64,000 nucleotides of DNA from assembly GCA_013115145.1 (NCBI GenBank), contig JAAPAO010000036.1, positions 50,079 to 114,078 on the forward strand, written 5' to 3'. Within the stretch, counting starts at the first letter, position 1. Every line of letters begins with the position of its first letter. The notes under the pieces were generated by a model. The model did no database searches. It was not told where the DNA came from and saw only the letters and a program-made list of their open reading frames with translations. This DNA comes from Perkinsus chesapeaki ATCC PRA-425 (taxonomy: Eukaryota > Protista > Perkinsozoa). Below, one piece after another: positions 3,046-46,133 of this stretch. The position numbers and the translations under genes are program-made.

Positions 3046-3426
3046 ATGCATCTCTTTTCCACCGCCGTCACCTTGGTCGCCTCTCTCTTGGGTAACTCCT
3101 TGGCCCAAAACTATGGCACCTACTCTCAGTGCTATGCGAATCGCACACCATTGAGCAAGATCGATGTTTCTAAGAGTGGCATTAGGTTCCACTTCAGGGC
3201 TATCAACGAAGAAACTTATGAGAAACCAGCCGCTGTGTATGGACCGTATTCGTATTCCTTTTTTGATGGTGAGGTCATAAGCCCCAATATACATGAGGAC
3301 GATCCCATACTTGTCGATTATGCGGCGTACCTGAGCTCCAGCTCGTTTTATTCAATTGCATACTATAACAACGAACTATATATACATTCCTTGAGGGGCG
3401 GAGGTACCCAACCATATTGTCAATAG
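3046..3426 (+). CDS. Small predicted secreted protein (~126 aa if unspliced)
   Basis: ATG at 3046 gives MHLFSTAVTLVASLLGNSLAQ (signal-peptide-like) in the 2737..3426 ORF; no family recognised. Confidence 0.55.
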   Translation: MHLFSTAVTLVASLLGNSLAQNYGTYSQCYANRTPLSKIDVSKSGIRFHFRAINEETYEKPAAVYGPYSYSFFDGEVISPNIHEDDPILVDYAAYLSSSSFYSIAYYNNELYIHSLRGGGTQPYCQ

Positions 3427-4099
3427 TAGCATTCGTCCTTCACTATTGTACTACCGACACAAGAAGCGTGTCAAATCTTGAACTGTGAGCTGTGTCATCT
3501 CTATCCATCATAGTTGACCTCTCATGCATCCTGCGAGTCGCGTTACTAAGAAGTCTGCTAATACCTCATCTGCTCAAGGATCTGATGAACACGGTGGTCG
3601 TGACAGCTTAAGTGGTCAATTCCATTCAAATAGGTATTACAACTTGTGAGTTTCAAGATACAAGTTGTACCATACAACCAATATTTAGAGATCGTTGTGT
3701 TAGTCAACTCTGTCTATTATTTGTTCACTTTTCTCGAGCTGACGAGACACTCCTATTTCGGAGGCCAAAAACGTTTGGCTAGCTGGCAGATGCTTTTGTA
3801 TGCTACGTTACTAACGTATAACGTAACGTTAGAATAGGGAGAGTGTGGTTAATGCGCGCGGTAAGTGCCTTTCATAAATGGCGACCTACGGTAAGCTAGA
3901 AACTTGACTATGGTGCTGATCCAGCCCATTTGTGAAGGTAAGTGACAATCAAAATGTTTTTCGTCGAAGAAAGCGAGAAACCGTAGTCACTTACAATGGC
4001 TGTCTGACAGCTCATAGCAGGGTAGATACCCTCCAGCCATGGTGGCTACTGTGAGATCCGCGGGTTTTATAGTAGTCGCCCTAGTATGACTTGCCACTC

Positions 4100-23338: not shown

Positions 23339-25083
23339 ATGGCCTCTGAGGCAAGCGTGTCCGAGGCGGATAAAGTAAACGGAGTGAGTGACGATAACAC
23401 GGAGAAACAGGGGGACGAGAGAGATATGCTCATAAGGGTAGCGATTCGCACGTTTTACAGTGGCAGGCTCGACGTTTCCAAGTCAGCTGCTGCTGTAGAA
23501 ACTGTTAATGACTTAATCGAAACCGAGCTATCCAAACGGAAGCGCTCTGCGTCAGTATTGGTAAATTTTCCTGCCTACCTTACGTTCAACTCGAAGACTC
23601 GTTCATATAGGAAAATCTGACCACGACTGGCAGCTTGAGTGTGGATGGAATCGAGGAGGATTCCTCCCCCAAAAATCCCGCGATTCATTTGCCTTGCTCG
23701 CCGTCGCCTCGTCGATATAGGCTGAAATCAGGCATACCTCGGACAAGTGCAACGTGCAGCATACTACAGATCTGCCTATGATAAAATACGCGAAGGGGAT
23801 GACTTCTTCACGTAGGGACATTCTCACCCCGATAAAACCAGGCAATGTGAACACTCAGGTTGAGAAGGGAGAAAGAGAGGCAAAAAACAATAAACGCAGG
23901 TATGTGGTCTCCACCAAGTGTACAGGGAGTCGAGTGGCATTGAGCTCTCCATCTCGAAGCTGCACAATTATGAAGTCGTGTGCTTCAGATCTTCGCCGGA
24001 AGCTGGACGAAACAGGAATACTTGTCCTGGAGAGCCGTGTCAAAACTCTAGAGAATGAAGCTAACTGCCAATATCAGCTTCAGCTTGATAGCTCACACGC
24101 AGGTTAAGGCAATAACCGCGGAGCTTTGTGATGCGCAGAGTGAACTAAAACTAGTCAAGGACACCAGGGACAAATATCGTGACTTGTAAATAAAGCTTAT
24201 AATTCTACCATTAGCCACACTTGCCACTCGAGATATGCCCGATTTGCGAAGAAGTGCGAGGAGCTAATGATCAAGCTGAACGAAACTGAAACAGCAAGAA
24301 ATGTGTAGCACAACGAATCCGTGAATGCAGTTGAATCATCTCGCGTACCAGGGCAGAGGGGGATCGAGAAAGACTACAAGCCTTTCTCACAGCATGCTGC
24401 GACGAACACAATCAAGACGCCTACAGCTTGGGAGTGAAGCTATCCAGAAGCCGGGAGAATTACAAGGTTGGGCACGGTCATGACTATCATCTGGACAACG
24501 TGGGAATCCTTGGTGCTCCTTGTAGGCTTTGCAAGGGAGTCTCAGCTTGGCAAGGTCGGAGGTGAATCGGCTAGAGAGAAGAGTTGAGGAGCTCGAAGAA
24601 GAGGTGACTCTATCCCCACTTGACATAACAGAGTTTGGTTCCACCGTGTATAGGTGAGAAATTATCGAACGAGATGTGAGCTGGCTAAAAGTGTACACGA
24701 GTTCGAGGCCGAAGCACAACAAGAGAGCTTCGATGGGGAAATGAACAGCCTGCTCAAAGCCAAGGACATCCAGATTGACAGAGAGGTCTGTCCTTTGTTC
24801 TCGACGTTGATCGACTGATAAAGGTTCACAGATACGTAGGGCAGACCGAGCCGCTCAAGAGGCGACCTTGTTGAAAATACATTGTTATGGGAAAGAACGT
24901 GGAATGCCACACTATAGTGGGTCAATTTGGCCAAGCCGCATTTACAACATCTGTGGACGTCTACGAGAGCTCGCCTCTTGCTTAGGTCCCTCGTTCAGTG
25001 AGGCTTTACAAGAGATGGAAGCTATAGATGCAGAAATCGATAGAATAGATCCAGCCTATGCTACTTGGAAAAATAGGCTAAAG
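23339..25083 (+). CDS. Multi-exon coiled-coil hypothetical protein
   Basis: Start MASEASVSEAD; E/K/L-rich heptad exons; final exon ...EIDRIDPAYATWKNRLK*. Confidence 0.5.
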
Positions 25084-25345
25084 TAAGAGCAGATAGCTTA
25101 GTATAAGCGTTCCCACTTGCTTGATATGAGGTTCCATAGCGACTTCGAAAGAGATGGTACGGTGACACACGTGAATGGAGATGAACGAGAAGTTACAACC
25201 CAAACGATGAGCTCGCTCCGCGATGATAATCGTCCTACCACGGACTAGAGTTTTCTTGCAACCTAATTGTGATGCCTTGTATAAGAGGAACATGCACTAA
25301 CGCGTAGATTGTTTAGAGCTTCTAGCCCCTCTCTGGATTCCTCCT

Positions 25346-27361
25346 ATGGCATCGACGCCGACACCCGTCAACAAATGGTCCTGGGCCAGCAGCCGCCATA
25401 GTTCGGAGAGGCCAAGAGAACGCCTCTCAAGTGCCCGTAAGCAATGCTCAGTTTACCAGCTCTAGTAGCTCGTCGGACCACTGCTGCCCCGTTCAGGCCG
25501 CGAGTCCTGTCCAAGTGGAGATCCTACCTTAGTTCGGGTTTGGCCCCAGCGAGGCCTTTCAAGTGTTGTTGTATCGGTAAGCTTGTTGCGAATACTACCC
25601 AGCTGTAGTCGGCTTCACAACACGCGTCGAACATCGATGGCCTATTTCAAGAATCTCCCGAAAGACCTTCTCATTGAGAACTTAGTTCTCAAGCCTCTTT
25701 AAGCTTACACGGCGCGACTTCGCTTTAACCAGTTTCAAAAAGTCCTACTTACGAACCTCAATGAGACTTCTTCAAACCGATAGCTAGACAAAATACGAAA
25801 CTTTCTTGAAATAAACAACGGCTTTTGGAATGGGTGAAGCCTCTTGAGCTACTTCTTGTAAGAGCTACTCACACCCTAGGAAGCATTTCCTTCAAGAGAC
25901 TTTATAAATAGGCTCCAGGTCTATGTGAGTTTACAGTTTGTCGCCAAAACGCCCGAGCACTCCGTTTCTTGCACGTTTCACTGCGTGCTCTCAGGCTAAT
26001 GGATCGTGTCTTAACGGGGATTCTGATGACTCGCTTGCAGATGATGTATGAGTTCTCAAAGTTACACCGGCAGGGTATTTCACGCAGGTACTCCGTCTGT
26101 ATATTGAGAATCGACAGCTCAATGTTAATGGAAGGTTTCCGGAGCACAGGACCCGGGAAAAGTCACATTCGTCTGAGGAAGGACAGACGGCGAAGGAAGC
26201 CAAGATGGGCTCAGCGTCATTCTCCGAGAGATCTTCAGAGAGGGTTGCTGCCTTTCCTGCAGGTGTTCTCTTATTCGGGCTTGCATACACGCTCTTTTGA
26301 CTAGGACATAAACTGGATATGACCGAGCCTAAATCTCCAGCTAGTGTACCTAGAGTTCCTTCGAGTACGAGCCTGTCGACTAGAGAGGAAAACCTTTGCG
26401 AGATTCTCCGATCGGAGATTGCTTTTCTCGAGCGGAAGCTGCAACGATCCAATGAGTGAGTGACTGGAGCATTCTGCAGTGCTAGAGCTCACACGGCAAA
26501 ATCAGGTACGCTAAGTACGGTGAAGTGTCACCCCCCGAGATAACAATAGGCGACCTATCTCCGATAAGCAGCGTCTCGCGGTGTGGGTTCATCGGAGATG
26601 GACTGCTGGACACGATTCCCTTCAGGTGGTGTGAATGCTGCTTTATATGCCAACAAAAGTCTCGAGGAGGTTTCGCTGCGTTGCGATGCTTTAGAGGAGC
26701 AAATGAAGCAAGTGAAGTCGAAATTGGTAGGGAATGACCCTACCGCTCACAAGCTGAATCCGGTTCTGTGACATTCCAGAGCCATGGTGAATCGAGAACC
26801 AGTGTATCATCAAGAGCCACTCGAATTGAACCGTGGATGGAGGCGTCGGCTTCGGCGAAGATCAGGTCTGTCGCGTACTTGCAAGCCAGGGTCATATGGC
26901 TACTCATATCGTGGATATCTACTTCGGTGTGTATGCATTGTGACATTACAGTATCACTTCAGGCTACTTGAAGAAAAGCTGAACAGCGCTCGCCAGGAGG
27001 CTGCCAAGTGGAAGGTAGCGACGATTAAATACTTCCACTTCCTATAGTGTTCCTTATACAGGACGCATTCCAACAGCTTGAGCTGGAGCAGCGTGAACTC
27101 ATTGAGGCGTCTTATGCAGACGAGCGCCGACTGAGAGAGCTAACGGATAAGGTGAAGTCATATACGAATCCCTCGGCAATAATAGCTGAGCACGTCGTCT
27201 TGTGCCGTTCGCCGACGTCATGCCATCACATGATGGTGCTGTGCCAGGTATCGCAGTTAGAAGCTCAATTGAACAGTAGAGTAGTGAACTTAGATGCCAC
27301 GAGAGCCCCGATACGGTCGAAGAAGCTCAGACTGCATAAGAGTTCAAACCCTGGTTGTTGA
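25346..27361 (+). CDS. Multi-exon coiled-coil hypothetical protein
   Basis: Start MASTPTPVNKWSW followed by gtaag donor; exons LEEQMKQVKSKL, LLEEKLNSARQEAAKWK, FQQLELEQRELIEASYADERRLREL, QLEAQLNSR. Confidence 0.5.
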
Positions 27362-28807
27362 CATTCACCTGCTTGCCTTTTGGACTGATCGTGATTCAAT
27401 TGTTTGATGTTGAGTTGCCATCGACCGCTTTTTAATGGGATAAACACTACACATCGCCTGGGGAAAGTCTTCTCACAGCCTTTGCATGTAAACCGAGAGC
27501 ACCAGACAAGGTGCTCTAACATGCAAACAGATTTCTGAACTTCTATGATCCACAGAAAAGATCTACGATAATAGTTGAATGAGAACCATGAATGTTAGAA
27601 TGCCGGATATCCGTGCATCGGCGGCGGTTGATTTCTTCTCCTCGAAATCGAAATACGGTGTCTCCCGTGATGTACCACAAGCCTCCTAAGTCAACAACCG
27701 AACTCAAGCTATCAGACGAGCTACTACTACACGTGTGGTTGATTCTTGGCAAAGGAGGGATTCGCGCCCAATTGAGAGCAAAGCTGGAACCGATCTTGAC
27801 AAAATAGCAGCTGAATTGATGCCACATGCGTTAAGGGCCCAACGGCAGGTCGGGCGATCGTTGCATGCATCTAAGATGCCAATGAATGAGCCCGTAAGGA
27901 TCGATGACGGCTACCCCTTTCGAAGAGGAGCTTGCATATTTCATGATAATCTCTGGACATTAAATCGAATAACGTGTCTCGATACGCGGGGTCTCTCGAT
28001 GAGCGCCTAACCAGGCTTGACGTACCTAGCCAAGGTGGAGGTAATATCGAAACGTTCGGACCGAATAAATCATACGCGAGAAAACGCATTTGCCCCATGG
28101 AGCTTTCCAGGTGCAGCTGTCATCCGAGTCACAGTCGACCTCCCCTGTATGCTTGTCACACACTTCGCAAGATTGATCAAAATAAGACTGTGATCGATGC
28201 ATGCAAGCTCAGTCTTGCAAGCTACAGCTTTAGTACGCGTGTTAGATCGTCCAGAGAGGTAACGTCTATCTTCTCGTACAGATTGCATACACGACTATCC
28301 GACAAGGCACAGCCTCCTTGGACGTCCTAAAAGATCATTAGCTTCTCGTAGAACAAAAAACAGTGTTCCTTTACATCCCATTCACAGAATCTCCCTGAGG
28401 AGGATGTCAGGTCTGCCCGGAGGAAGAGACACAACAATACACAAAACATATATAAAAGAAGAGAGGATACGTCACTTTTGATATAGAGATAGCACGGGAT
28501 GAAGTGACCAACTCGACGCTCTCATTGTGAAAAGACCATTGGCTAAGCTGATCGGACACAAGCCGAAACAGGTTGAAGCCTTGCTGAAAGCAAGACAGAC
28601 AATCCGGTCACAACTGACCAGCGGGAGAGAGAGTCTGCAACAACTGTATTCAACATTTAGGCTAATATGGACGGATCATCCTTCATCACGGAGCACAGAG
28701 TAAACTTTAAGTCCGTCACATAATAGCTTAGTTGTTAGGGTTTGTGGAACACGCACTATCCGAGAATAGGTTTATGCCGCATTAATTATGCGGCCGATCG
28801 TAGTTGG

Positions 28808-31800
28808 CTAAATAAACCTGAATACTTCAGCGTGAAAGCCAGCAACATTGTTGAAACTATTGCGGCAGTGCAGATAAGCAGACCAGCAGGCATCTGTAGC
28901 AAAGCGGATAATATCAGTATGATTAATTCGACAATCAACCTTACTCTGCAGTGGAACAGGACCACAAACGAATAACCCGATCTGCTCCTCTCCACCCACT
29001 GAGGGAATGCGCAAATCCACCACCCCAAGATTGAATGAAGCCTCACCTTCCGCGCAGACTCGACTAATATATTGCTTCACATCTGGTATACCATCCTCAT
29101 CGGTATTCATACAAGTAACTGAATGAAACTTTACTGCACTCCAGCAGCTTATCAACACGATAAAGGTTAAAATACAGTCACACTCAGGCGTAAGTCTGAT
29201 AGGAGTCCTGTAGAAAGTAGGTTGGTCGATTATGAGGAGCTGAATTCACCTGGACATGTTACCGTTTCCTGGGGAGACATAGTCAGACAGAACAGGTAAA
29301 AGAAGGTCGCTCATGTCATTATTTCTATGAGGCCAGAACAAAAAGACCTTCTTTTGCATTGAGCTGAGAAGAAGAGAGGGATAGTTGAGGGTAACAACTA
29401 CAATCAGTCGGTACCTAGCCAAAGAGACTAAGCTCATCGCGGGAGTGATCCCGGTCCCACCACAAAGAAACACGATTACAGAATCTAACAGAAGAGGACA
29501 GCCATCTTCAGTGCAACACGAAGTGGGCACAGGCCTAGGAGACACTGACTTTTAGAAAGTACAGCGGGGAGGTTTCCGGCTCCATGAGGGCCAGAGACCC
29601 TAACCGGACGTCCCTCAAGAGCCTCCATATTATTCCACAAGTAGCTGAGACAGGAGAGACAATTCAGCCAAGCCTTTGGCATGCAAAGATTCTTCGGATA
29701 ACAACCTTACGTGCAGAATGGCCCGGGGCTGCGTCCAATAACGAGCCGGAACTCTGCAGTCTTATCGCAGGTGGGTATCTGGGCAATCGATGCACCGTAC
29801 GACTTTCCCTTTGAGACATTAGCTTACGACGGTAAAAGGATGGTAGGTAAGTAGAGGAGGCCCCTGCAGTTGTATACCAACCCATCTACCAGGGAGAAAT
29901 CTGAAATGACTGAGGAATAGACAAAACTGCAAAGACAATACGAACGCACTTTCTATATCGGAAGGCCTTGCTAGATGCCTTGAACTCTAAGCACACCGCA
30001 GAATTTCCCAGAGGAGTGCATCGGGAGATGATGTAATCTGAAGGAATATTAACTCGACAAGATGATCCAATCAACATCGACCCACTTGGTTTAACAAGCC
30101 TTGCGAAGAAAGCCATTTTACCCGGAATGTGCGAGAGAACGGCAAGAGCCAGAATTATGGCAGCAGATATCCAACTACGCCCATTATCTGGGGGATAGCT
30201 ATTTATGAGAGTAGCTAACTGGAGTGTGTGGTATGACTCACATCCAAGGTGTGCAAATATCAAAGATACAGTGACAATCCAGAAGATAATATGATTTGCC
30301 AAGAAAAGATCATAAGGTAGCTGAGAAATAAACGAGGCTATGCAAAACAGTGATGGCCTCAATAATAGCTCACCTTCACGAAAATTGGCAGCGCAGCGCT
30401 CATCGTGGTCGCAACCAGGAAAGCTAAACTAGATATTCCTAGCCTAATATTCCAAAAGTTATAACCACTGTACACGCACTCCGCAATTCTGATATAACCT
30501 GTTATATAACAATGATACGTCGGGCTTACGCGTGAGCAATAACAAATGCCATAGCAAATAAGGTAATTACTCCATGATATCGTATAACCCTCTCGAAGCC
30601 TGGAAACAAAGAAATAACAATAATCACGAGCCTCATCGGCGCTAACGTGATTAACTAGCTCACCCTCGTCAAGCAGTGGCTGGACCACGTTCTTTGATGC
30701 GGCGACTACAGCAATCGATAAGAAGTACACAGCAACTTGTCCGAGGGAGGCTCTGAAGTGAAAGATGAGATGCAGCCGACAGCCAGCCTAATCAAAGCTA
30801 GCATTCGTCTTACGAGTAATCTATCTTATTGCCCCCCTCAGCCTTCACAGCGAACAACAACGCTAAAAGGGGTAAGCAATGATCTCTGGATCAGTGTAAA
30901 GCACAAACAGAAAAAGGAGCCCCCAACTTACCGATGCCAATGACCAATATAGCTGCTAGCCCGAGTAGACCCTAAGTTAAAGAGCTGGATGCCTGGCGTA
31001 GCTCAAATAATACCTTCTTCGAGGGGACTGGTGGAAGCCCGAGAGGTGAATTGAGATAACGGCGTAGAACTATTCTCCCGATAAGTAGAATCTGGGAAGG
31101 GTTAACTAGTAGGATACTAAGGTAAGTTCGTGCTACCAGCCCGGTGAGAAAGAATGCCACGATTGGGCTGGCAATAACCGTAGGGGACTCATCGACCTGA
31201 GGGAATTAATAGAGCAAGCCAATCATATCGTCACTGACGCCGGGAGAACGATCCGGTAGAATACTTGGCTTCTCTGGTTGGCTAATAGTTAAGGGCTGAC
31301 AGGAGCGGATGGTGATAAATAGAGTTCCACTCACCGATAACCTCACTTCGTTAAAAAGAGAAGGGTGTGGTGCCAAGTTTTGTCCTTCAATGGATAGGGT
31401 GCTTGAGGGTCTGGAGTCGAATAATAGATTATGAAATGTAAGGTGAATGTTCCGAGTATCTATATTGTTGAAGGGATGGATACCCACAGCAGCAGGCCAT
31501 CTCCTACCCGCAGGAATAACAGCATATGTGTGGCCCCACGGGGCATACAAAAATGTACCATCTTCTGAGCGAATGCTCTGAGAATAAAATCGGCGTAAGC
31601 ATCGCAAAATAGCGCGAAACTCTTTGGGATTTAATTGCGAATGTTGAGGAAGTAGTTGTGGCTCCCCAGCTGGCACCGACGATCAAAATGACAAAGCTAC
31701 TTACAACATGACAGACGCACTCCTGGCTTCGTCCCAGCGCATCAGCCCAGTCGATGATAGCTCCATTTCTGCCAGTATAAACCCCTATATTAGACGCATT

Positions 31801-32418
31801 TAGAGGTTCGATATCCGATGCAGCTACGGGAAGCAGATAACCACTAAACTGATCCAGGGGACAACTTACTGCACGACTTGTGCCCGACGATGCGAGAGCT
31901 AGGATCCCCGGGGAGTGATCCTAAAGTGGGATAATATGGGAATGCATTGAGTTGGTTCAAAGCATTGGAGGTACTCCGATCCTCATGAAGCGTGCTCATG
32001 ATATTCTCTCTTTGCCCACTATGGATCCAGTAGTTATACAGGCAGCAAGGATCTCCGAGCTCATCACCGTTCGAGTAGCCATCACTGATAAATGAACAAG
32101 AGAAAGACATCTTCTAAGTCGACTTACCCATCGCTGTCAATGGCACACAAGGTGTCAGACCAAACGTGTTGTCCTTTGGCGAAATCTATGCCGAACGGGC
32201 TGAGACCCCCAGTCTGGCTGTGCCCAAAGCGGCGATATCCTGCAATACTTGGACCGCGGAACGGGAGAACCTGCCAACCGATGAAGAAGCGGTAGACTTT
32301 GATGGATGGCCTCCTTTATAGGAAGAGGCCTTGAATTAGCCGAGCCCAGCCTCACCTCGTTGTAAATGGGTAAGCAATCGCAATAGAAGTATATGACGGG
32401 GAGAATCACGGCTCGCAT
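28808..32418 (-). CDS. Temptin-like domain / ferric reductase (FRE/NOX family) fusion protein, paralog A
   Basis: Signal peptide MRAVILPVIYFYCDC; spliced LSPFGIDFAKGQHVWSDTLCAIDSDG|DGYSNGDELGDPCCLYNYW; TM helix YDLFLANH-x13-H; YHPFTVV (FAD); VSGPHG; FLCGGTGITP (NAD(P)H); LFVCGP; C-terminal FHAEVF. Confidence 0.85.
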
Positions 32419-33240
32419 TCTCCGGAGCAAAATCAGAACTTCTGAGTAAAACATCTGTAAGCTCTCAAGAGCAAAGCGACATGCCGAGTTCCGAGTCCGA
32501 ACTCTAAAGCACCTACCACGCTGGGATACTTTTGACATCGGGTAACGGTAAAGACATTCTAAATAGGCTCGTATCGTGATAGATACATCGATGGGTACCA
32601 TCTGTAGATTTTACAGGGTAGAAGATGGCTGATTCTGGTAACAGAGGCCTCATACAGAGAAGTTCTTGGCGGGCAATTGACGAAGCGCAGGTGAATCTTA
32701 CTTTTCGCTAACAGCATGCATAAGAAGATTCCGGTCTTATCTTGCAACTCACACGCGTCCGCCGCGTACGCGTGCGCTCTCCCGCACAAGGAACGTCCCG
32801 CTCCTGATCAACTACTAGGGCAGGGGAATGTAAAGACTCGCAGCAACAGATGACCGACCAGAATCAACTTACATACAGCAGAGCAGATAAAACAGCTACG
32901 AACAGTACAAGCAGAAGGAAGTCCGTTCAAGGAACGCGGGAACCCCCTGCCAAATTGCTGAATACGCGAGCGCAAAGGCAGATGCGTACGTAAGGATTTT
33001 CTGAATCTGTGCGGTAAACGCACCTCGTTATACCCTGCCTCTGCCCGAGAATTGCGATTACAGAGGTATATCGCAGGCTCTTGGCAGTGGCCTGAGGACC
33101 TCTTCCCACATACCGCCCCCTAGGCAGTGCTCAGCTTCTAACGCAAGATCAGAGGGAGGCTAAACACACCAATACGTGGGCATATTGATTGATCTTCATT
33201 CAAAGTCATCGATGTACGAACCATATCGCTCCCGGAGAAA

Positions 33241-36200
33241 TCAGAGGAATCGAAATTGGCAGTCATGAAATGCTCGCAGTGCCGGTGATGTCTGCTTGAT
33301 CTCCGTATAGGCTTTAAAGGCAGACTCTGCATAGTACGCAGTGCACACAGTCTGTTACGTGAAGTCTGCTTCCCACCGGGAAGCAGACTACCACCCACCT
33401 TTCAGACTTTCCGGGCCACACACGAATAATCCAACAGAGTCCCTCGATTTGCCTACGAAAGTTACGAGTGATTAACTCATCCTACTTAATGCCATATGCA
33501 AATTCGTTTACGGTTGTTGTTATTCACACCAGACAGCTAGTGGCGCGCATAGTAGACGACGGAGAGAAATGGAGGTATAAAGCTAGCCTTCGAAACCTTT
33601 GAAATATTTCTTTGGTGATGAGGGTGGCGGGAGACAACACAACGTTGGTAGAGTACGTACACATTTCACCAGGGAAAACTTTACCTTCGCAAAATTCTGT
33701 GATGACTTTTAATAAGTCAGGCCTAGGCCTCCCTTCTGCAGTATTGACAACGGTATCTAGCTAAACCATACAAGTATTCAGTAATTTCCGTACATGAGCC
33801 CTTATCGGTGAGGGCGGCAAGCTGCGAAGACAGTAGCTCTATCATTTGCTTATTGCGAGCGATCCAAAGGACGTTCGGCTGTTGCCCTCGATTCCTAAGG
33901 AAATCAAATACATCAGCCTGTTAGAGACAATGGGTACATTGTGGCTGTAGCGAGTGATAGTGCTGGGGTTATACCCGAGCCTCCACAGATAAAAAGGATA
34001 TCCGAGCCTGGAGACCCACAACTGAGTCGATGGCGGACAAAGGATTGCCCTCTTTTACAAGCTCTCAAAGCAGCTGGTACACCAGCCTCTCCATAAGGCC
34101 CAGTCAGGGTGACTCGTTGACCTTCGAGTGAGGTGCCCGCCTTCACCAGGGAGCTAAGGATCCACAATAGTGTACTTGACTCTAGGTCGTCAGGCAGAGA
34201 CCTTGTGAATGTTGAGGTGCCTCCAGTGGCAGCAGCAATCACCAAGGTAACGGCTTTCTGGTTATCGCTGACGGGTATCTAAGGGACGCATCATGCCTTC
34301 GGAGTGAATACTCTTTACCACTGTGAAAGGGTGCTCAGCCGCTCGAGTTACACTGGGGACGCTCAGCCCCGCCCACTGGCCCGGTTTGAATCTGTCACAA
34401 GCTGGTGGCTTCAACGCCACTGAGAGTTTTACGGGGCCTTTCTTCCGTCTGTTTTTTCAATCTCAAGAAAAACTGCCTTCCCACCAAGTACAATAGCACG
34501 CTTTACGACGAAGTCTGGAAAATCGGCCATCGTAGGCGATCAGAGCGAAAAGGTCGCTCACTAGGGCGGACAAGACGCCAAATAATAACGAGTTTTGCAG
34601 GGACATGAGTGAGCACAGCCACACCTAGGATGATCGCAGCAGCCACACCGCTCCTTTCAGTATCTACATTATTTAGCCAATGTGGAAGAAAGCCGCAACC
34701 CTGTGGTCTGGGATATACCTACTGATCGTATGTAAAATCAATAGAAAGCTGATAATGGTGACCAGCACGACATGAAGCAAACGGAAAAGGTCATAGGTTA
34801 TCTGTGGCAGAATCAAGAATGGGCAAGTGTGACAGGTGGGCTCACCACTTTAACTTGCTGGAATCCTAGCACTGTGAGAATGATAACTCCGAATAATGCG
34901 AGCGCTATGACAGCGTAAACCATATTAGAACCAGGGAACGCGAAGCCAGTGATATATATTTCCATAATACTGAAAGCAGTAAAAGAGTTCGGGAAGGTGG
35001 GTGGGTCAATCAGCGGCGGGCTACCCGTGGGCGATTCCAGCGAACACCGCAAGGTAGGCGAATATAGCATGGTATAGTGGAAGCTGCTCAAAGCCTACAC
35101 AAGGCTATGAGCAGCCATAGCCTGGCCTCCTTCAATAAACTCACCACAATGCAGTACTCTTTCAATAAGGCTTCTGTTTCCCATGGTAATAACGAAAGCC
35201 ATAAACAGCGCGGCCACGTGTCCCAAGGCGGACCTGCAGAGCAACAGGCTACATCAAACAAGCGCAGAGTTGGAGGGCAGCCCACTGGTAGAATATTTTG
35301 TAGTCCCTCTCGGCTTTCAAGGCGAACAGCAAGCCTAAGATGAAGTTAGGCGTATAATGAAACGCTTGGGAACGTGCTAACCTATTCCGGCACCGACACC
35401 GATAATCGTGCAGAGACACTCCTGAATCCAATACCAATGACAAAGGGCCAGAGAACAGCAGTAAAACACAACTCACCTTCGGTGATGGCCACAGAAATAG
35501 TAGGAATCTCTGATTCATACGATTCTTCAGCAAATAACCTCCTACGAAGAGCAGCTAAGAACAACTATAGTTTCAGCTAGAGGGTATATGGCCTGCAAGC
35601 CATGGGGTCTCACCAAGCCAGTTCCGAAGTAAAACACAAGAGGTGAAATGAGGACAACGGTACCGTCGTCGACCTGGCAAGAGAGCACAGCTGGCTCACT
35701 ACAACATTACGTAGAAGAGAAGTACCGTTTGAGAGGGAGCTCGAGGCTTGTCGGGAGAGTCCATGGTAAGAGCCTGAAGAGGTTCAGCTGGTGAGTAGAA
35801 CTCACGGAATGTTAGCTTGAAGTTTGAACTTGTCGAAACCATAAAGGATTACTTACTTCATCGTATCGAGTAGGATGATCTTCAGGGCCAACGGCTCCGA
35901 GAGGTAGGCTGTCAGAGAAGGGTGAGCGACCGAACAGATTACGCGAAGCTAGACGAATCTCACTAATGTCTGAAAATAGGTAGACTAGGGAAAGAGAAGA
36001 TCTAGAATCACTCAAGGACGTATTGGAGACCTTGTACAATACGCCATTACGCCTGTGTAAGGCGCCTTACTATTCGGTATGACTGCATGTCTCTGACCCC
36101 ACGGAACAGTGAGCTGATCGCCGTTATTGTAACGAACGACCTAATAATGAGACGACTGCCGGTTACAGAGACCCCCTCGGGGAGTTGCGCACACAGACTA

Positions 36201-37092
36201 CCACAGTGCAAACGCATTCTTCACTGTCCTTCAGAGCATCGGCCCACTCCACTATGTATCCCGAAGCGGCTCGGCTGACCTTCACTCCCGCTACACTGAG
36301 AGGAGTTGCTATTGGAGAGGCTGAGAACAAATGCGATCTAGTCTGACGGATGGTGCTGTATCTCAACCAAGTTCATACTGCAGGACTTTCTATTCGTAGG
36401 AACTGAGCTCGCATCACCGGGTAGAGTACCTGGAAGGAAGTTCCTATGGACCACGTCTTGATAGGAAGGGCATATTTTGATACAATGGACAACAAAGAGC
36501 TTGGACGAAGGCTTTCGACTCGAAGCATGTAGTAATAGTCTATTGCTAAATGTGTGGAACTAAATCTGTTTTTTGGGGCGAGAGTAAGTTCAAGAATTTA
36601 TCCCGGATAGTTACGTTGGTCTGGGTATAGCAAGTTGCCGAGCTCAGTCGGTTTGCCGTGTGCACGCCAGTAGTTGTAAATGCAACAAGGATCGCCCAGC
36701 TCATCTCCATTCGAGAATCCATCACTGACGGCGAAACTAAATCTGGCGCGGCTCCAGAGGGCAACTAACCCGTCGCTATCTGCTACACAGTAGCGATCTC
36801 GCCATACTTCTCCCGAATCTTCGAATGCATCCCCGAAGCCATTCACATTGTCCTCGGTAGCCGAGTTGCAAGCATCTATGAATGAGATCGTCCTGAAATG
36901 GTGAAAACCATTGGTTGCAATACCATGACCGAAAGTGCAGCAGCCATCAATACAGGCACCATGGAAGGGCAGGACCTGACAGAAATCATCCCTCCAAGAC
37001 TAAGAGATGTTCACCTCTGAATACGACGGATAGCAGGAGAGCCGAGGAAGGAATGGAAAAATGGATATGATGGTTGTATGTTGCCAATGCAT
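33241..37092 (-). CDS. Temptin-like domain / ferric reductase fusion protein, paralog B
   Basis: MHWQHTTIISIFPFLPRLSCYPSYSE|VLPFHG...VNGFGDAFEDSGEVWRDRYCVADSDG|DGFSNGDELGDPCCIYNYW; YDLFRLLH-x13-H; EHPFTVV; LTGPYG; FICGGSGITP; LFVCGP; AFHDCQF; shares checked intron positions with paralog A. Confidence 0.85.
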
Positions 37093-38960
37093 TATAAACA
37101 ATGGAATGTGCTGATCGACAGGCGAAGCAAAGGTACAAACGCTCATTGAAAATGTCCCTCCGTTATGTGCAATGCGGGCCACGGTTTACGGATCTCAGAC
37201 GCGTCGTTATCAAATTCTGGACAAGTCACACGTAAAACGGGCGATGTGTAAAAAGACGTTTCATAAGTTATCACGCGGAGTTATCACGCGGTGCGCGTAT
37301 CAGATTATATCAGGCGGGCGTATCCACTCCTTTAATGAGGTAACACCGGTCCAGGCCCATTGACGTTATGAAAAATCAAGAATGACAACGTGGCGGGGGA
37401 AGATTATTCTGCTCGAATGAGCCTACTCTGCCGAGCAAAACCAGTTAGGCAGCTTCACGCGTGATTCAGGCCCATCACCATGGATATGATCGATGAGACT
37501 AGCGACTCGTCACTTCGGAATTGACTCTAGGGTTACCCTGGGTAAAGGTATTTTTGCAACACGTCGCGTATTTTACAACTCCGTTTTTGTAAGCACTCCG
37601 CTTCTCCCGACTTGGTTTTTGCCGCTTTCGTTTTTCTTTACTAAGTTCACTCCGCTTTTCTTAGCTTCAGTTTTCTTGGCTCCGTATTGCACGGTACGGT
37701 TGCCTTTTTCTATACAATTTCACGTTATCCTTCACGCCTCTACTTTTCTAGCTTCGCTTTCTTCGTCCCGTTCTGCTGAGCAAATTTTTCAAAGGCCATC
37801 GAGGCGGCTTCACGATGGCAACAAATACTAGGGTAAACATTGGATCAGCATACTCCATGCGCAGCAGCCATCAATGTAAGGAAAGACCATGAAAAGGCCT
37901 GCAAGGCCTTCTGTGCGGCCGTGGCATTTATTTCAGTTTGTTGAAGTTATTGGTCTGTCCCGGGAAGGTACATACATCCATCCACGCTCCACCAATGCGA
38001 CAGGAAGGGATAGATCGTGTTCGTTTGATTCGGAAGGCTTCGAGACTTGACTCTCGCATGGGGAATCCTCACTGGCGCAGCCCGACCATTGCCCACTCCT
38101 CAACCGACAGGCATCCTGATGAGCCTTCTAAATTATGAGTAACAATATATGTATGAATACAGTGGACATGTCCTGTACAAAGTACTCCATGTAATGTCGT
38201 GCAGCACAACTTGTGCTGCGAGATCCAGGTACCAAAGCCATGTGCTCCAGCATTCATTTCTGTCATTTCAGTTTACCCAGTTGCAACATGCGCAAAATCC
38301 AGTCGATGTAACAGGCTCAACGACATCGTTCGAAGCCGGATCAAAAAGCACTGGTCGGTTACTCCGAGGTGTGATCCGCGCCACGACATACTTCTCAACG
38401 AAAAGTTCCATCGGATAGTGGAGCGACTTAATCTTCGAAAACTGCCCTTTTCATTGTCGGATAGCGAACGCACCTCCGGGTGTCCACAACCGCCCATCCG
38501 AGAGGCTGAACTTCATGATAGAAGCTTCGTGATCTTCTGCGTGTCGGCATTCGTTGTGTCCTTTCGTGTATGCCTTCGTATAAATTGAAGTCACAGATAG
38601 TATGGCGTGTAGACAGGCCAGCACAGTAGGAAAGGAGACCACACGGATTGCCTCATACTCAGCTAGCAGTCAATATCGAGCCCAAATGAGTCTTGTACTC
38701 TGTGCGGCATACAGCCCATACGAGACGCCTCCGGCTGAGCTAACAAAGTGGCATACTTTGATTGTGTGGTAGATCCGGATCGACTAAGCTACCTAGATCG
38801 CGGCAGGGACACCAGACGGAGCAGATACGCAGACGTGGTGTCACCGCGGATGACTCCCAGTCATTGCTCCTCTGAGTCCGACTGTTCCCGGTCTAGTCTA
38901 TGGAGAAGGCCTGTACTAAATACGAAATGAGTTGAATGTTGAGCTGTTTTCTCTTATATC

Positions 38961-40026
38961 ATGAAGCTGCTCCTCAACACTATCTTCGGCCTCCTCTTGT
39001 TCTCAGATGCGGTTAATATCGTGTATCGAGACTATAAAGAAGGCGATGAATTCGTTGAACCAAATGAGGAGTTTCGTCAATGTCCCATCAAAAAGGGACT
39101 TCCTTGCTATGTCGCAGTCGATGAAGACATAGGCGCTACGGTGAGTTCATGTCGACGAGTCCCTGGATATACAAATTGGTTGCCAAATGCAAGGACGACC
39201 ACAAATCTGCGGCTGATCCACAACTATATCTACGTTTCAGGCGGTTGTCGGCTTCATCGGTATGACATTAAACTACGAGTTGACCCCAGAGGAATTACTT
39301 GCTCTCAAAAAACATATGTAGGGTCAAGGACTTCGACCATACCGCACTATCTATGATGTTCCATTGTGATGCATACCCTCGATCAGGCTACATCCGTCGA
39401 CCAATGCGAAAGTAAACTATGTAGACAATGTAGGTGTAGGAAATCGCGTATTTTAGCTTCTTTCTTAGTTTTGATAGCTCGACGACGACTATACGTTTCA
39501 CTTGAATGCGTGACATGAATATCCTTCACAATACGTCGGTTATGTCTTAGGTTGAGGTCGCCACAAGCTATCAAGGACGTCGTATTGGGACCACTCTGCT
39601 GAAATACAGTCTTAAACTCGTAAGAACATTTGTTCTGTGGTTAAATCTACTGTGCTTGGTCGGCGAGTGTGTAGCACTTTACGTGCTATACACCGTATAC
39701 TCATACGATCTAACAAGTGAGCACCTTGGACCTAAGGTATAACTTACGTTAGGTATAATATTTTCCCCCAAGATAGTAATGTCTGTTGCCGATCAGGGGG
39801 AAAAAGCGACAGACGTCCTTGCTCTCACTCTGGACGTCTGGAAAGTGAACGAAGGCGCAATTAAGCTTTATGAGAGACTTGGTTTCATCAAGTTCATGGG
39901 TGAGCTGGGCAAGATTAGGAGTTCGACTATCAGTGGAAAATCTACACATGAGCTACCTTGCTGTTGCTTCTCTCAGAGGGGGTAGAAGACGCATCTGTTT
40001 GGTACTTTTATGCCTATTATTATTAA
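38961..40026 (+). CDS. GNAT-family N-acetyltransferase with N-terminal signal peptide (GNAT1, apparently intact)
   Basis: Exons: MKLLLNTIFGLLLFSDAVNIVYRD...IGAT | AVVGFIGM...KKH | HPSTNAKVNYVDN | VEVATSYQGRRIGTTLLKYSLKL (motif A, from 39551) | GEKATDVLALTLDVWKVNEGAIKLYERLGF (motif B) | ...AYYY*. Confidence 0.85.
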
Positions 40027-41728
40027 GCCGATTATTTCAAGCGTTATAGGATATGATCAGCTCCGAATGATCTACTATTTCGCGAACAACATTGAGCAGG
40101 TAACAATAACGAGTTGCGCCCGTTTTGTCACTGAAATTCATTGCAGGCACTTTCTTTAGTAGGAAACTCCATTCTGTTAACTGGCTTCGTTACTGTACTT
40201 GCCAGGCAATAAGACAGTGTTCGTTATTACGGTTTCGCGATGTCTACAAATGATCGTATGTAGTAACGATGATTCATCGTCGATGAAGCTGAATACAGTT
40301 GATAACGGATGATGTTTGTGTTTTTGTTACCGATAAGGGATGGAAAAGGCTCCTTGTCTCAGACAGCATATCTGATTGCATAACATGGGGTAGCAGCCAT
40401 GCTAGCAGCCTGACTATGTGAGCAATCCACTGGAGATAAATTCAAAAGACGACGCGCCCAAAAAAGTACAGGGACTTTTGGTACGTAGGTCTAGTGCAAT
40501 GCTATACTAGACCACGGCATGGTCTACGGCCGTGCCATAGTAGACCCTCAATCGTAGTGCCCGAGTCGGGACTCCCGACTTGGGAGAATCTTGAAGACTG
40601 ACGCAAGGCTTCCTTCCAGACTATGAGAGCCTTGGATCCAACTACTGCCGACTCTTGCGAATGGTCGGCAGACAGTATCAGATCGATGATGAACGGATTC
40701 CAGTCATTGGAATTCCGCCCACGAACGTGGGTGCTCATAATGGGGCACGTAGGACGATTGTCGTTGTAGATGATTGAGACGGTCCTTAATATCGAGCAAT
40801 ACTGCATTGCCAATACATGGTACAACAATCACATTCTCCCGCTCTAGGAAGAATGTGAATCTATTCTTTCGCCATTAACATCGTCTCTCGGGCCCTCCAA
40901 GCACTCAACGTGTGCTCGCACACGGGGCGACTAGTGCGTCACTGGAGCGCGTATCTTTGCACTTTCATGCACTATCGCACTCTGAATATTTGCTATCGTA
41001 TGTCGGTAGTCCTCTGTTGCGAACGCTGTTGGTGTAACTCCACCCTTCTTTTTCTTCCCGCCGCAGCGCTGTATCACTTGTCACCGTATTCTCGAATATC
41101 ATCCGCACAAGGCGTGCGGGCTGGAGGTTTCCCATGTCTACTCTACGCTCGTTGTGTTGCTCCAGGGGTCAGAGCGCTAGTCTCTGGGCCTTCATCCCTT
41201 GGCGATTCTCGGAACGGCTCTATAAACTCTAGAGTTCTGCTGTAGAACTGTTCTACTGCTGTACGCTAATATCGTGATCTCCCGCCCAGTCCGAATGTAC
41301 TTGCATGTGGTGAAGTTAGAGTTTATATATATGTACCTTTCCCCGATTGAATTGAAACTCTTGTTAATTGATTTGTGAAGCGGTCCTGAATGCGATCTTA
41401 AACTATAAACTTCCTGTATCTACTTCTTTCAATCACCTTAAACGAAGCGCATTTCTACCTTATGTAGCGAACGGTACGTTTTGACACGACACGTCCCTGT
41501 GGATTGAAACACTCGCTTTGATACTCGAGCGAGGACGGTGATTTTGAGGTGTCTATGTCTCACGCTACCTGATTGAGCGGCCGCGTCCTTGTTGTGTTCT
41601 CCCAATGGTCTCCTGTGTACGAGTCCTGAATGCTTTACAACGAAGATGCGGCGTGTTATCGTATTTCGAAAGAGCAGTCGGAATTCGAAAACATATGTAG
41701 ATCAATAACTGGGGCGTTCTGCAATTCA

Positions 41729-41843
41729 GGGTAGCAGCAGTTAGTAGTTGGGCTGAGCAGCTTGCTTAGCCCAACTACTAACTGCTACTACCCTTGCTTA
41801 CCACAGGCGTATTCAGAATCTGAATACGCTTGTGCTAAGCAAG
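41729..41843. repeat. Two abutting long inverted repeats (31-bp arms/3-nt loop; 25-bp arms/1-nt loop)
   Basis: 41729-41793 gggtagcagcagttagtagttgggctgagca-gct-tgcttagcccaactactaactgctactaccc (2 mismatches); 41793-41843 cttgcttaccacaggcgtattcaga-a-tctgaatacgcttgtgctaagcaag (2 mismatches). Confidence 0.95.
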
Positions 41844-42359
41844 TGTACTGGGTAGGATCAAAAACACAGCTGGCTGCACATGAGCATGAACCATCGAACC
41901 CATTGATACCTTTTGAATCGATCTCGATGATAACCTCCGACGTTACTATGAAAGTAGCTTGACGTTTTAACTTCTGTGGCGATATTTCATCTGATGGAGA
42001 CCTCGTCATAGACCTTAGTTTTTATTTCAACGTGGAAAGGCGTAGAGAACACAGAACAATGGGACAGGAGACCACACTCACTTGGCGGGAATGTACTGAA
42101 GTACTTTCGGTGTGATATATCCATTTTAGTAGTCCCTTGCCAAGCTAACATACATGTGATTGATGTATATACAATAGCTTCGGTTTCACTCAGCTATCTA
42201 GAACGTGGTAAGAACACCAGACAGACTAGACACGCAGACGTGGAGTTTGCGGAGAGACTGCTGGGGACATCTCCAGCCTTGCCAGACATCGGGCGTCTCC
42301 ACAGATAATTCCGGAGACATGTCCGTCGGAGATTGTCCAAGACTTGGACATAAACCCAC

Positions 42360-43248
42360 CATGGACTACGGTGGGTTTATGTCGACGAACTTACGGGCAT
42401 ACAATTGGGTGGTTTCCAACGAAGTCTATACATCCCACGAGTCCACGGCCGATCAGCAAATATATCTACCTGTCAGGCAGTTGTTGGCTTCATCGGTATG
42501 ACATTAAATTATGAGTTGACCTGAGAGGAATCACTAGCTCTCGAAGAGCATATGTAGTTTCGAGGACTTCGACCATACCGCACTATCTCGCGATGATGTT
42601 CCATTGTGATGCACACCCTCGATCAGGCCACACCCCTCGACCAATGAGAAGGTCAACTATGTAGACAATGTAGGTGTTGAAAGCCGCGTATTTTAGCTTC
42701 TTTCTTACTTTTAGTAGTTCGATGACGACTATGCGTTTCAGTTGAACATTTCAGATGAATATCCTTCACAGTGCGCCTGTTGCCTTAGGTTGAGGTCGCC
42801 TCGACACATCGAGGAAACAAAATTGGGTCAGCACTGTTGAACTACAGTATTGAACTAGTAAGAGTCTTCGCTTTCCGACTGTGTCTACTAGACACTGTCT
42901 AGTCGGCGAACATGATGTTACTTTGCACCTGAGATATAACTTGTTGCTAGGCTATAGGATAGCATGTTCTGTTGCCTGTTAGGGAAGACATATGACGGAC
43001 GTTCTCGCTCTCACTCTGGACGTCTACGCAACCAACGAAGGCGCGATCAGGTTGTATGAGAGGCTCGTCTTCATTAAATTCATGGGTAAGCTGGGCAAGT
43101 CTTTACCCGGCAAGAGTAAGAGCCGACTGCTCCTCTTCTGTTGCTTCTCTCAGAGGGGGTGGAAAACGGATCTGCCTGGTACTTCTTCGCCTATTACTAT
43201 GAACGCGATTCTTTCAAGAATTGTAGGACCTGCTTATCTCCGAATTAG
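42360..43248 (+). pseudogene. GNAT paralog 2, disabled
   Basis: Same exon structure (VEVASTHRGNKIGSALL; TLDVYATNEGAIRLYERLVF) but most of the signal-peptide exon is missing, in-frame TGA at 42522-42524 where GNAT1 has CCA, and the terminal TAA is replaced by GAA. Confidence 0.8.
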
Positions 43249-43815
43249 GTGTGGAAAACATTGAACAGGCAACAATAACGAGTCGCACCCGCTGTGTCTC
43301 GCTTACTGAAATTCATTGCAGGCACTATCATTAGCGGGAAACTCCATTCTGTTAACTGGCTTCGGTACTTGCCAGACAATAAGACAATGCTCATTATTAT
43401 AGCTTTGGGATGTCTACAGATGATTGTGTACTGTAACGATGTAGCTGAATACAATTGATGATGATTTGTGTTGTTATCACTTAAAAGAGATGAGAAGGAC
43501 CTCCTGTCTGATTCTCCAACACGGGGCAGCAGTCATGACAACAATCTGGCCATATAATCAATCCATGGGTGAGTAATACAGTATATGGGACGAAAGTGAC
43601 AAGTTTGACTACGAGTCACTGGCGAAACTGTGACCGTAGTTTTGTCTCCGCTCTCTAATATAGAGTCTATATAACAAAGCGGAGAATTGCATAATAGCGT
43701 GCATTTCCTTGCGGCGTTTACATGGTTCCGGCTATCACTAATACCCTAACAAATATCCATTCCGGCCGCTCTGAGCTATATCAAGGTTTAGAATCCAGGG
43801 TTTGAGTGTAAATCT

Positions 43816-45071
43816 ATGCTGGTCCATTGTTCAATAACGGTTGTTGCCTTCGTAGTATTAGGATATCTTATGAACTCCAGGCCATCTCCGTCGGGCGCTT
43901 CTATCTTGATATATCTGTGCAGGTGTTTCTTTGCTAGCAGCGGTTTGTTCCCAATACTCCAGTATATGGTCCAAGGTTTATGTGCTATGGTATGCTTAAC
44001 TTGTCCATTAAGGGCCAGAGCCCAGGTATTGGAGCTTTGCATCATGCAAGGGCATCTACCGGATTTCGGTTACAGCTTATTTGCAAAGGTTACCTTTACG
44101 ACAAGCGAAGTGTGGGCCATTGTGTATACAGGGTCACCAAGCATGTTCTTCGTCTGTAAAGATTGGTATGAAAGTCAGCTTGGTGAATGAGCGTGTGCGC
44201 ATTTCAGTGGCGAATGCTATGCTTGCCCTGAGCCTTGTGAGCCAGTTGAAGAAGACATCATTGAGTTCAACGACGATACTGTCGTAAATGTCTTTGACTA
44301 CAAAGATACAATCATATTTGGCCAGAGTCGCATTTCTGATTTGCATTTCGGGTTGGTATATGACCAAGACCCCCCTCCACAAGAAAGTACACCCTTCAGT
44401 TTAACTGGCCTTGGACCGTACCAACAGGGCGATTTTAACTCGCTGTTAGAACAATTGGCGAGTATGTCCCCCCCAAACAGGTAGCAGCCAAGGTCTTCGC
44501 GGTATACCTCAGCCCACCGACCGGTCGTGATCCTGCTCATGGCAAGCTTCTTCTGGGTCAAGGTGACCCCGGAATCTATAAGCACCCGCTATACTATGTG
44601 CACTTCAACAGTGAGAGAGAGTACACATTCACACTAAAGAGCATGCAAGTTGGTGAAGAGGGCCTCACCCTTGGCAGGCAAGAGGAAATCATGCTGGACA
44701 CTGGGAGCAATAATCTTAGTATTCCCGAGATCTACTTCGACGGCCTCCTTAAGAAGATCGAAAACGGGGCTTCGAAAAAGGCTGGAGCGAAGATCACACT
44801 GTCCTGGGATCCCTTGATCAAGCACTGGGTTGTGACTTGCGCCCATCGTATCGTTCTGCCGCCGTTGCTCTTCTGGTTTGGTACAAAAGGTGATGCTCTT
44901 TTAACTATTACTCACGTAAACTACATTCGTGATAGTGGTTCAATGTGTGTTCTAATTCTACACAAGGCAAAAGGGTCAATGTGGAGTTTACCGGATCAGA
45001 CGTTGGTCGGTTAATACTTCGAATTCCGACCCGAAGAAGGTCGAGTTGGATTCGCCGACTTGGCTTCTTAG
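43816..45071 (+). pseudogene. Pepsin-like (A1) aspartic protease pseudogene
   Basis: Signal-like N-terminus; first catalytic motif reads AIVYTGS (D>Y); TGA at 44188-90; frameshift at C7 run 44468-74; second motif IMLDTGS intact; TAA at 45012-14; C-terminal YFEF...RVGFA*. Confidence 0.85.
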
Positions 45072-46133
45072 GTGATCAACTTGAACTCATGAAACTTTAC
45101 AATGCTCAATTAGTACATTCCTTAACCTACAGCTCACCCACTAGGGGTACTAGATATCCTGATATAGTCTCCAGCACTTAATAGTCTGGGCAGTCATTGC
45201 CCTTAATCTTCGATCTTCTCTTGCGTCACTTTAGTAACGGGACACTAGGTTAAAACGTGGGTTCAGCCATAGAAAGCCTATGCTGACCAATGCTGCCTGC
45301 CATCCAGCAAAGTCATGTACCCTTTATTGAATCCCACCGACGTTGGGTGGCTTTTAGTCGGGGTCCGCCCATCAGACCTTGAATCAAAGGCTTTAACTGA
45401 GTCAAAGAATTGGCTTAGACGACATCGGCGTCGACAGTCTTGGTGAACTTATTAATATTAGTTTCGGACACTCCTAGCCCGCAAGTTGTACGCATGACAG
45501 TGCTCGTTCAAATTCAACGGTTGAATCGGTTGAGTCTGGATCGGCGATGAACACACAGCGTGTTACACAACTCAAACTGAGCAGAAGTGAGCAGTGCTCT
45601 GAACTTCTTAGACTTCTTTCCGTCAGCTTGTCAACGAAACTTCCTCCACATTACGCACGTTGGTTTCGGCACCACAACCACTGTATCAGGACTAGTCGTC
45701 AGTAGTAGCATATCGACAGCAGGACTTCAGCAACATTACCCTCAGTTGGTTTTGGGGCAGTAGCATCCTTGCTGTAGAGAGTGAATTCACAGGCATCTTC
45801 CATCAGAGGATCACGCGAGCAGCTCCTTCCCTGTGAACTGTTTCTCCTAACCTCCATGCGCACCTTACTAGATCACTCCGACTGTCACCAATTACACTAA
45901 AACTTGATCCGCCGTATTAACAATTAAGATAATAGGAAGCATACAAAGAAACTGCGGTAAAAGGAGTAGCTAAGCGCTGGGCCAAGGCGATGAGCCACTC
46001 ATCATGAGCGCAACTATAATGAACATCAAATTTACCGCTCGGACTCGGTGATTAGCTCCAGAAACTGATATCTTTCAATGTATCGGTGTTAGTGTACAAG
46101 TTTGCCGCTTTCTCGAATTTGATGCAAAAGACG

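Follow-up and report, generated by a model that had tools for sequence, protein, structure and literature searches.

Closest Described Systems

Ferric reductases of the FRE family that carry an extracellular N-terminal domain have been catalogued as the DOMON-FRE architecture (M10, known from Naegleria, Albugo, and Phytophthora; Zhang et al., 2013, PMC3591440), and that catalogue of FRD architectures lists no temptin. Temptin, first described as a protein of the Aplysia pheromone complex, and the stand-alone temptin-like proteins of oomycetes (P0002, P0004, and P0006 in our numbering) are small secreted proteins of roughly 100–300 aa, which share one Pfam domain, Temptin_C, with the residues GH, FG, W, and C and a DxDxDG..NG.ELGDPCC loop. 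The only published temptin fusion that we found is the temptin/copper-monooxygenase hybrid, at the time held to be lophotrochozoan-specific (Takahashi et al., 2009, PMC2762978; represented here by Lymnaea P0017 and Macrostomum P0021), in which Temptin_C stands N-terminal on an extracellular redox enzyme, the usual place of DOMON. Here we describe a tandem pair of paralogous genes, A and B, in which Temptin_C precedes a complete FRE-type module. They are found in a 64,000-nucleotide (nt) stretch of the genome of Perkinsus chesapeaki, a perkinsid alveolate parasitic on clams (contig JAAPAO010000036.1, positions 50,079 to 114,078, assembly GCA_013115145.1; hereafter the window), both on the minus strand, at 32418..28808 (gene A, with its stop at 28808) and 37092..33241 (gene B, taking 37092 as its start), where the original prediction, made from the sequence alone, had placed them. 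Judging from domains and motifs, the two probably encode NADPH-dependent metal reductases of the FRE type, with seven transmembrane (TM) helices and a temptin ectodomain.

Each of the described systems is like this pair in some respects and different in others. Compared with the DOMON-FRE proteins, the Perkinsus ectodomain consists of Temptin_C and a predicted FN3/Ig-like sandwich, with no DOMON match. The temptin/copper-monooxygenase hybrids differ in the partner, which is a soluble or lumenal copper monooxygenase, as opposed to a membrane flavocytochrome. DUOX is alike in possessing an extracellular N-terminal domain, an extra TM helix, a six-TM core, and a cytosolic dehydrogenase domain, behind a signal peptide to which the hydrophobic N-termini of the Perkinsus proteins would correspond, but these proteins lack its peroxidase-like domain, the cytosolic EF-hands, and the NOX His-119, and their calcium-type loop would lie on the outer side of the membrane. 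Yeast FRE1 and plant FRO are alike in the H-x13-H pairs in TM3 and TM5, in the HPFT, GxGxxP, and CGP motifs, and in the probable Fe(III)/Cu(II) substrate, but they have extra TM helices and no folded temptin-type ectodomain. Relative to the stand-alone temptins, the Perkinsus domains are divergent (56 versus 100–190 bits) and would be anchored to the membrane as part of an enzyme.

The Temptin Domain and Its Link to the Membrane

As had been proposed, the N-terminal domain genuinely belongs to Temptin_C, and its DxDxDG-type loop is intact. On the public gene B protein (P0001, 724 aa), the Pfam profile (PF24784) scores 56.4 bits (E = 4.4e-15; cut-off 27), and in both genes it matches both exons that flank the intron within the motif, the gene A exons scoring 27.0 and 23.9 bits singly. 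The family-invariant GH, FG, W, C, DxDxDG, NGxELGDP, and C are kept in both genes in an alignment of 22 sequences, and the same columns are likewise invariant in 42 environmental open reading frames (ORFs). The motif as originally worded is present in both genes, except that its spacing is F-x6-W, not F-x5-W. The loop itself reads DSDGDG(Y/F)SNGDE in both, together with conserved cysteines, and its DxDxDGxxNGxE pattern places acidic or amide residues at what we take to be EF-hand positions 1, 3, 5, 9, and 12, suggesting an EF-hand-like loop of calcium type with putative calcium binding. Gene B differs from gene A and from all other family members by 21 additional residues inserted after GH and before FG (36860-36925). 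This insertion may be an unrecognised intron; no candidate has good splice scores, and the best one (36923..36876) scored poorly and was left out of the model. A sequence search of the PDB with the canonical temptin P0006 found no solved relative, and when the gene B exon was searched unspliced against the ESM Atlas, noise only came back (LGFP at 0.84). One Atlas cluster, of 69 mostly molluscan Temptin_C proteins (representative of 153 aa), is automatically named ‘Ferric-chelate reductase,’ a name that probably spread from FRRS1-like entries or fusion proteins.

The transcript evidence consists of contigs from two small runs of one study, of about 4 million letters each, which can show presence but not absence. 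The gene A contigs skip eight stretches of 42–127 nt, all of them bounded by GT..AG when read on the minus strand with the cut offsets applied; seven of the joints were listed directly, and the eighth (31136..31092) was set by fitting the loose end of a contig to the window. As contigs devoid of introns must come from spliced RNA, gene A is transcribed. One of the skipped stretches (32127..32085, 43 nt, GT..AG) is the phase-2 intron that had been predicted to separate DSDG from DG within the motif, confirmed in gene A by two spliced contigs of these runs, and its gene B equivalent, 36769..36725, is part of the public gene model. The joined gene A frame runs from CAIDSDG across the splice junction into DGYSNGDELGDPCC and on through the WADAL..ECVC segment, a hydrophobic helix, and a basic loop, with contig coverage extending to 31024, and the temptin exon, the middle domain, and the first membrane helix (TM0) are therefore physically linked. 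The question of whether the temptin exons might form a separate transcript is thus answered for gene A as far as TM0, but the heme helices lie outside the coverage.

The middle segment, WADAL..ECVC, noted originally as common to the two genes, is present in both curated models. For the ectodomain of gene B, AlphaFold2 (AF2) gives a model whose mean predicted local distance difference test (pLDDT) score is 62, with about 80 for the temptin core and 75–87 for the middle domain, which is modeled as a beta-sandwich. Foldseek matches of the middle domain are almost all FN3 domains (E about 0.01; VIA-align Z at most 5.1), and the domain may thus be FN3/Ig-like, this being a common fold for which such matches are weak evidence. 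DOMON (PF03351) has no Pfam match in P0001.

Membrane Core and Topology

The original prediction of a complete FRE/NOX-superfamily module holds for both curated models, which possess seven hydrophobic helices, one extra and six of the core, along with two H-x13-H pairs, HPFT, GP(H/Y)G, GG(T/S)GITP, CGP, and a terminal FH..F.F. The four heme-ligand histidine columns, in TM3 and TM5, are invariant among six fused proteins, and gene A aligns with the environmental protein P0014 from TM0 to the C-terminus, in addition to the temptin domain. In P0001, FAD_binding_8 (28.8 bits) and NAD_binding_6 (31.2 bits) both score over their cut-offs, and the dehydrogenase part matches the solved domain of csNOX5 (PDB 5O0X/8CAK, E = 8e-09).

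With the N-terminus outside and one extra helix, the six-TM core would be oriented in the canonical way, leaving the domains for FAD and NADPH in the cytosol, a predicted topology consistent with an ectodomain outside and a dehydrogenase inside. The same topological solution, through an extra TM helix, is used by DUOX. In the mechanism that we propose, the hydrophobic N-terminus would send the first ~250 residues outside the membrane, where they would form Temptin_C, with its EF-hand-like DSDGDGxSNGDE loop and conserved cysteines, followed by the FN3/Ig-like beta-sandwich; the extra helix would return the chain inside, as TM0 does in DUOX, and the six-TM core would hold two hemes on its two H-x13-H pairs. 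Electrons would pass from cytosolic NADPH through FAD and then through the inner and the outer heme to an extracellular acceptor, for which chelated Fe(III) or Cu(II) is the likeliest candidate. The temptin ectodomain would probably act as a calcium-stabilised cap or as a docking module over the outer heme, in a position like that of DOMON in DOMON-FRE. The earlier picture of a surface oxidoreductase with an extracellular calcium-binding or ligand-sensing domain is thus retained as to the calcium-type loop of Temptin_C, the FRE module, and a consistent topology, but not as to the host cue or the output of reactive oxygen species (ROS) that were part of it.

Metal Reductase or NOX

In NOX2, the heme ligands are histidines 101/115 and 209/222, and the NOX-specific signature includes His-119 and, in TM4, the dipeptide Thr-178/Gly-179 (Zhang et al., 2013, PMC3591440). 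The position that corresponds to His-119, four residues past the outer TM3 histidine, is occupied by Glu in both Perkinsus proteins (AHAIAE in gene A, AHGIME in gene B), and the spacing of the TM5 histidines is 13 residues in both, versus 12 in NOX2 (His-209, His-222). Neither cytosolic EF-hands nor other NOX regulatory modules were found in a Pfam scan of P0001, and the NOX histidine is absent from all the other fused proteins inspected. Because of the Glu at the His-119 position, the TM5 spacing of 13, and the lack of cytosolic EF-hands, the products of genes A and B look like metal reductases, and this is the enzyme type that we predict. The output of ROS that had been suggested for them finds no counterpart in these residues. 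The two proteins could alternatively be NOX-like ROS generators, gated by extracellular calcium or by a ligand on the temptin domain, since their superfamily core is common to NOX, the dehydrogenase domain matches csNOX5, the ectodomain and the extra helix are DUOX-like, and some FRE-clade proteins, yeast YNO1, for example, do make ROS (PMC3591440); however, with the features listed above pointing the other way in both proteins, we regard this alternative as quite improbable.

Several observations weigh against the interpretation of the pair as temptin-bearing metal reductases. The score of Ferric_reduct on P0001, 24 bits, is under the 28-bit cut-off, and the signature that separates FRE from NOX is predictive only. 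Transcript contigs of the two runs do not pass 31024 of gene A, and there is none on gene B (33241-37100), though the adjoining gene A is covered. The exons of the 3′ halves are inferred, in part by demanding agreement between the two genes. The signal peptides that had been claimed for both genes are only hydrophobic N-termini (best 9-aa Kyte-Doolittle values of 2.5 for gene A and 2.2 for gene B), and as such are candidate signal peptides. Placing the ectodomain over the heme is a conjecture, because the full-length AF2 model of P0001 (built with 7 sequences) is poor, with a pLDDT of 45; this model was set aside for the purposes of fold search and domain packing.

Gene Models and Public Annotation

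The features of the two genes are collected in Table 1. Identity between the two proteins is 38%, 22 of their introns fall at the same alignment column and in the same phase, and tblastx of one gene against the other gives about 25 conserved colinear blocks. Exon lengths are nearly parallel (110, 51, 119, 70, 113, then 60, 78, 40, 49, 89, 70, etc.), and the introns of the curated models are all GT-AG and mostly 39–72 nt in size, with two long ones, of 185 and 232 nt, in gene B. About six of the introns were picked by concordance between the two genes, and thus the agreement of intron positions is partly built in, while the agreement of the transcript-confirmed gene A introns with the public gene B introns is independent. 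The pair is the product of an old tandem duplication, with identity down to 38% and intron positions kept.

Table 1. Coordinates of the two temptin-reductase genes and of their parts in the window.
Feature	Position	Strand	Description and basis
Gene A, curated model	28808..32418	-	26 exons, 741 aa; Temptin_C-FN3-like-TM0-FRE; exons 2-10 from spliced contigs, later exons from GT-AG and colinearity with gene B
Gene A, Temptin_C	31975..32270	-	Exons 2+3 (32270..32128, 32084..31975), split by the motif intron; Pfam, RNA contigs, family alignment
Gene A, middle domain	31347..31823	-	WADAL..ECVC, PWG..AVIP; exons 5-7, contig-confirmed; beta-sandwich inferred from the gene B model
Gene A, TM0 and basic loop	31014..31196	-	TM0 at residues 249-267; exons 9-10; hydropathy, contig to 31024
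Gene A, predicted six-TM ferric reductase	30086..30971	-	H-x13-H in TM3 (356-370) and TM5 (419-433); PF01794 in the public model
Gene A, FAD and NADPH domains	28808..30037	-	HPFT (FAD); GPHG, GGTGITP, CGP (NADPH); motifs, alignment to P0014 residues 132-585
Gene B, curated model	33241..37092	-	25 exons, 747 aa; architecture as gene A
Gene B, Temptin_C	36615..36975	-	Exons 2+3 (36975..36770, 36724..36615), split by the motif intron; Pfam, public model
Gene B, middle domain	35857..36320	-	Predicted FN3/Ig-like beta-sandwich; AF2, Foldseek, VIA-align
Gene B, predicted six-TM ferric reductase	34562..35421	-	H-x13-H at residues 379-393 and 445-459
Gene B, FAD and NADPH domains	33241..34514	-	Pfam; csNOX5 match
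Gene B, exon absent from public model	36429..36379	-	Counterpart of the transcript-confirmed gene A exon 31920..31870
Gene B, exon absent from public model	33756..33685	-	Carries the GRP motif of the NADPH domain

Gene models were obtained with a small trained model, which recovered seven of the eight transcript-confirmed introns (its own training set), followed by hand curation against the paralog; homology-free gene finding by minimum-intron dynamic programming read through in-frame introns and was dropped in its favor. Doubt persists about exon 24 of gene A (29207..29047) on its 5′ side and about the start of gene B, which may be 37092 or an in-frame ATG at 37146. The public protein P0001 was placed on the window by a breadth-first exact mapper, which supersedes a literal tblastn mapping, and the public gene B locus matches the window base for base.

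One of the two copies, most likely gene B, could be unexpressed or decaying, leaving a single functional fusion gene. The missing gene B contigs, the 21-aa temptin insertion, and the two long introns would fit such a history, and the absence of contigs may mean either that expression differs or that the sampling was too shallow. However, the runs were small, and gene B maintains an open frame over 25 exons, with all cofactor motifs and the calcium loop intact. As an intact frame and intact motifs at only 38% identity suggest long-term constraint, we consider the decay of gene B unlikely.

When the temptin exon of gene B was searched unspliced against protein sequences, a single near-identical match came back, P0001 (E = 5e-62). 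This is gene B itself, deposited at NCBI as hypothetical protein FOL47_006456 and named ferric-chelate reductase (NADPH) in UniRef, and its public record already lists Temptin_C, FAD_binding_8, and NAD_binding_6. Gene A is split in the public annotation, into a 518-aa protein (32418..29485), with Temptin_C and Ferric_reduct (PF01794) on record, and a 67-aa fragment (29110..28808). The fusion is therefore carried in the public records of both genes, and the idea that the splice within the motif conceals it from annotation has to be given up. Both public models need correction. The one for gene B has 23 exons, starts at the ATG at 37146, which buries the hydrophobic N-terminus, and misses two exons, each of them conserved in gene A and concealed in an intron, of 294 and 341 nt, respectively.

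The neighbors of the pair, by public annotation (38900-47146 and 23339-27407), are a gene for an SNF2/Rad26-like helicase, one gene with matches to both a GNAT acetyltransferase and an aspartic protease, and two genes without Pfam matches. None of the neighbors in the window is obviously related to iron uptake.

Occurrence of the Fusion Outside Perkinsus

The same order of domains (signal peptide, represented in Perkinsus by a hydrophobic N-terminus, then Temptin_C, a linker or an extra domain, TM0, FRE core) is present in proteins from multiple other sources. One example is Cyanophora paradoxa, with two such proteins (P0011 and P0020). Another is the diplonemid Hemistasia phaeocysticola (P0015), which adds three DOMON domains to Temptin_C on one FRE. 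Five further examples are environmental sequences (P0014, P0016, L006, L043, and L054), among which L006, a groundwater metagenome contig of ~14 kb, encodes an intron-less 881-aa Temptin_C-FRE ORF (2874-5516), followed by a separate 187-aa temptin ORF (5715-6275).

A metagenome scan with Temptin_C patterns produced at least 353 loci, and partner domains were counted by Pfam in the 42 ORFs of at least 400 aa. The most frequent partner is the copper type II monooxygenase (24 of the 42 ORFs), followed by cytochrome b561 (5, in L044 after a copper monooxygenase), FRE (3: L006, L043, and L054), lipid/fatty-acid desaturase (3), SMP-30/gluconolactonase (2), CEMIP/G8 (2), and DOMON (1). Most partners of the long environmental Temptin_C proteins are thus redox enzymes, and the set largely matches that of DOMON. 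The 24 ORFs with copper monooxygenases contradict the view of the hybrid as lophotrochozoan-specific. Temptin_C occurs frequently in environmental sequences that are eukaryote-like and for the most part planktonic (L003-L082), where its usual position is N-terminal to redox enzymes. One of these (L044:217-2505) is a triple fusion of Temptin_C, a copper monooxygenase with both of its domains, and a C-terminal cytochrome b561, which would be a monooxygenase with its own transmembrane electron supply.

Searches of the ESM Atlas, with the whole of P0014 and by cluster, revealed no large cluster combining Temptin_C and FRE, and with FRE partners being so few, the fusion is recurrent but minor. A profile word search from the alignment of the fused proteins was unproductive, drawing its words from low-complexity linkers and missing even the alignment’s own members. 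A literature search found no paper on the Temptin_C-FRE fusion. The claim that the fusion is undescribed therefore stands for the literature, as far as it was searched, but does not extend to the databases, in which the fusion is already machine-annotated. The fusion is real and unpublished to that extent, yet neither unannotated nor Perkinsus-specific.

Host Link

The original prediction had also connected the temptin domain with cues from the mollusc host. Perkinsus parasitises molluscs, temptin was first known from Aplysia, and the large Atlas clusters of Temptin_C proteins are mostly molluscan, and these facts could suggest a host-interaction device, derived from a mollusc protein or mimicking one, and serving to sense or manipulate the clam. 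However, the fusion is also present in free-living Cyanophora and Hemistasia and in environmental sequences, the Perkinsus domains are uniformly 26–37% identical to protist, oomycete, and animal domains alike, and they would be tethered to the membrane, not secreted. In a maximum-likelihood tree of 23 Temptin_C domains, the Perkinsus pair forms its own long branch (98/93), apart from Lymnaea and outside a weakly supported group (84/88) of other FRE-fused and of animal monooxygenase-fused domains; with Lymnaea as the only mollusc and with long branches, the tree is weak evidence as to host origin. Given the tree placement and the occurrence of the fusion in free-living protists, there is no indication that the domain came from a mollusc or senses the host, and we consider a host-interaction device highly improbable. 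In our reading, the ectodomain is no host-pheromone mimic.

Implications

Overall, a domain known almost exclusively as a component of a mollusc pheromone acquires, with these data, a recurring protist context, with extracellular and transmembrane redox enzymes. The partners of Temptin_C in protists include copper monooxygenases, copper monooxygenase-cytochrome b561 chains, and NADPH ferric reductases, and also membrane desaturases. It is tempting, if speculative, to see in Temptin_C an extracellular module of ancient origin that is stabilised by calcium and accessory to redox enzymes, a functional counterpart of DOMON and not primarily a pheromone fold, and to see in the free temptin of molluscs a derived, released form; we hold this proposal to be possible, at odds well short of even. 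Temptin_C may relay electrons, a substrate, or a metal ion between the exterior and the enzyme in the membrane, and the question raised is whether it binds only calcium or, in addition, the reductase’s metal substrate or a protein that partners the reductase.

Reductive iron uptake usually begins with an enzyme of the FRE type, and clams and oysters have serious parasites in the species of Perkinsus. Two reductases at the surface, each with a folded ectodomain, would be plausible players in the iron uptake of these parasites, and possible surface antigens. Should Temptin_C prove to be an accessory module of redox enzymes, the Perkinsus pair would present a tractable case for the role of this domain on a ferric reductase.

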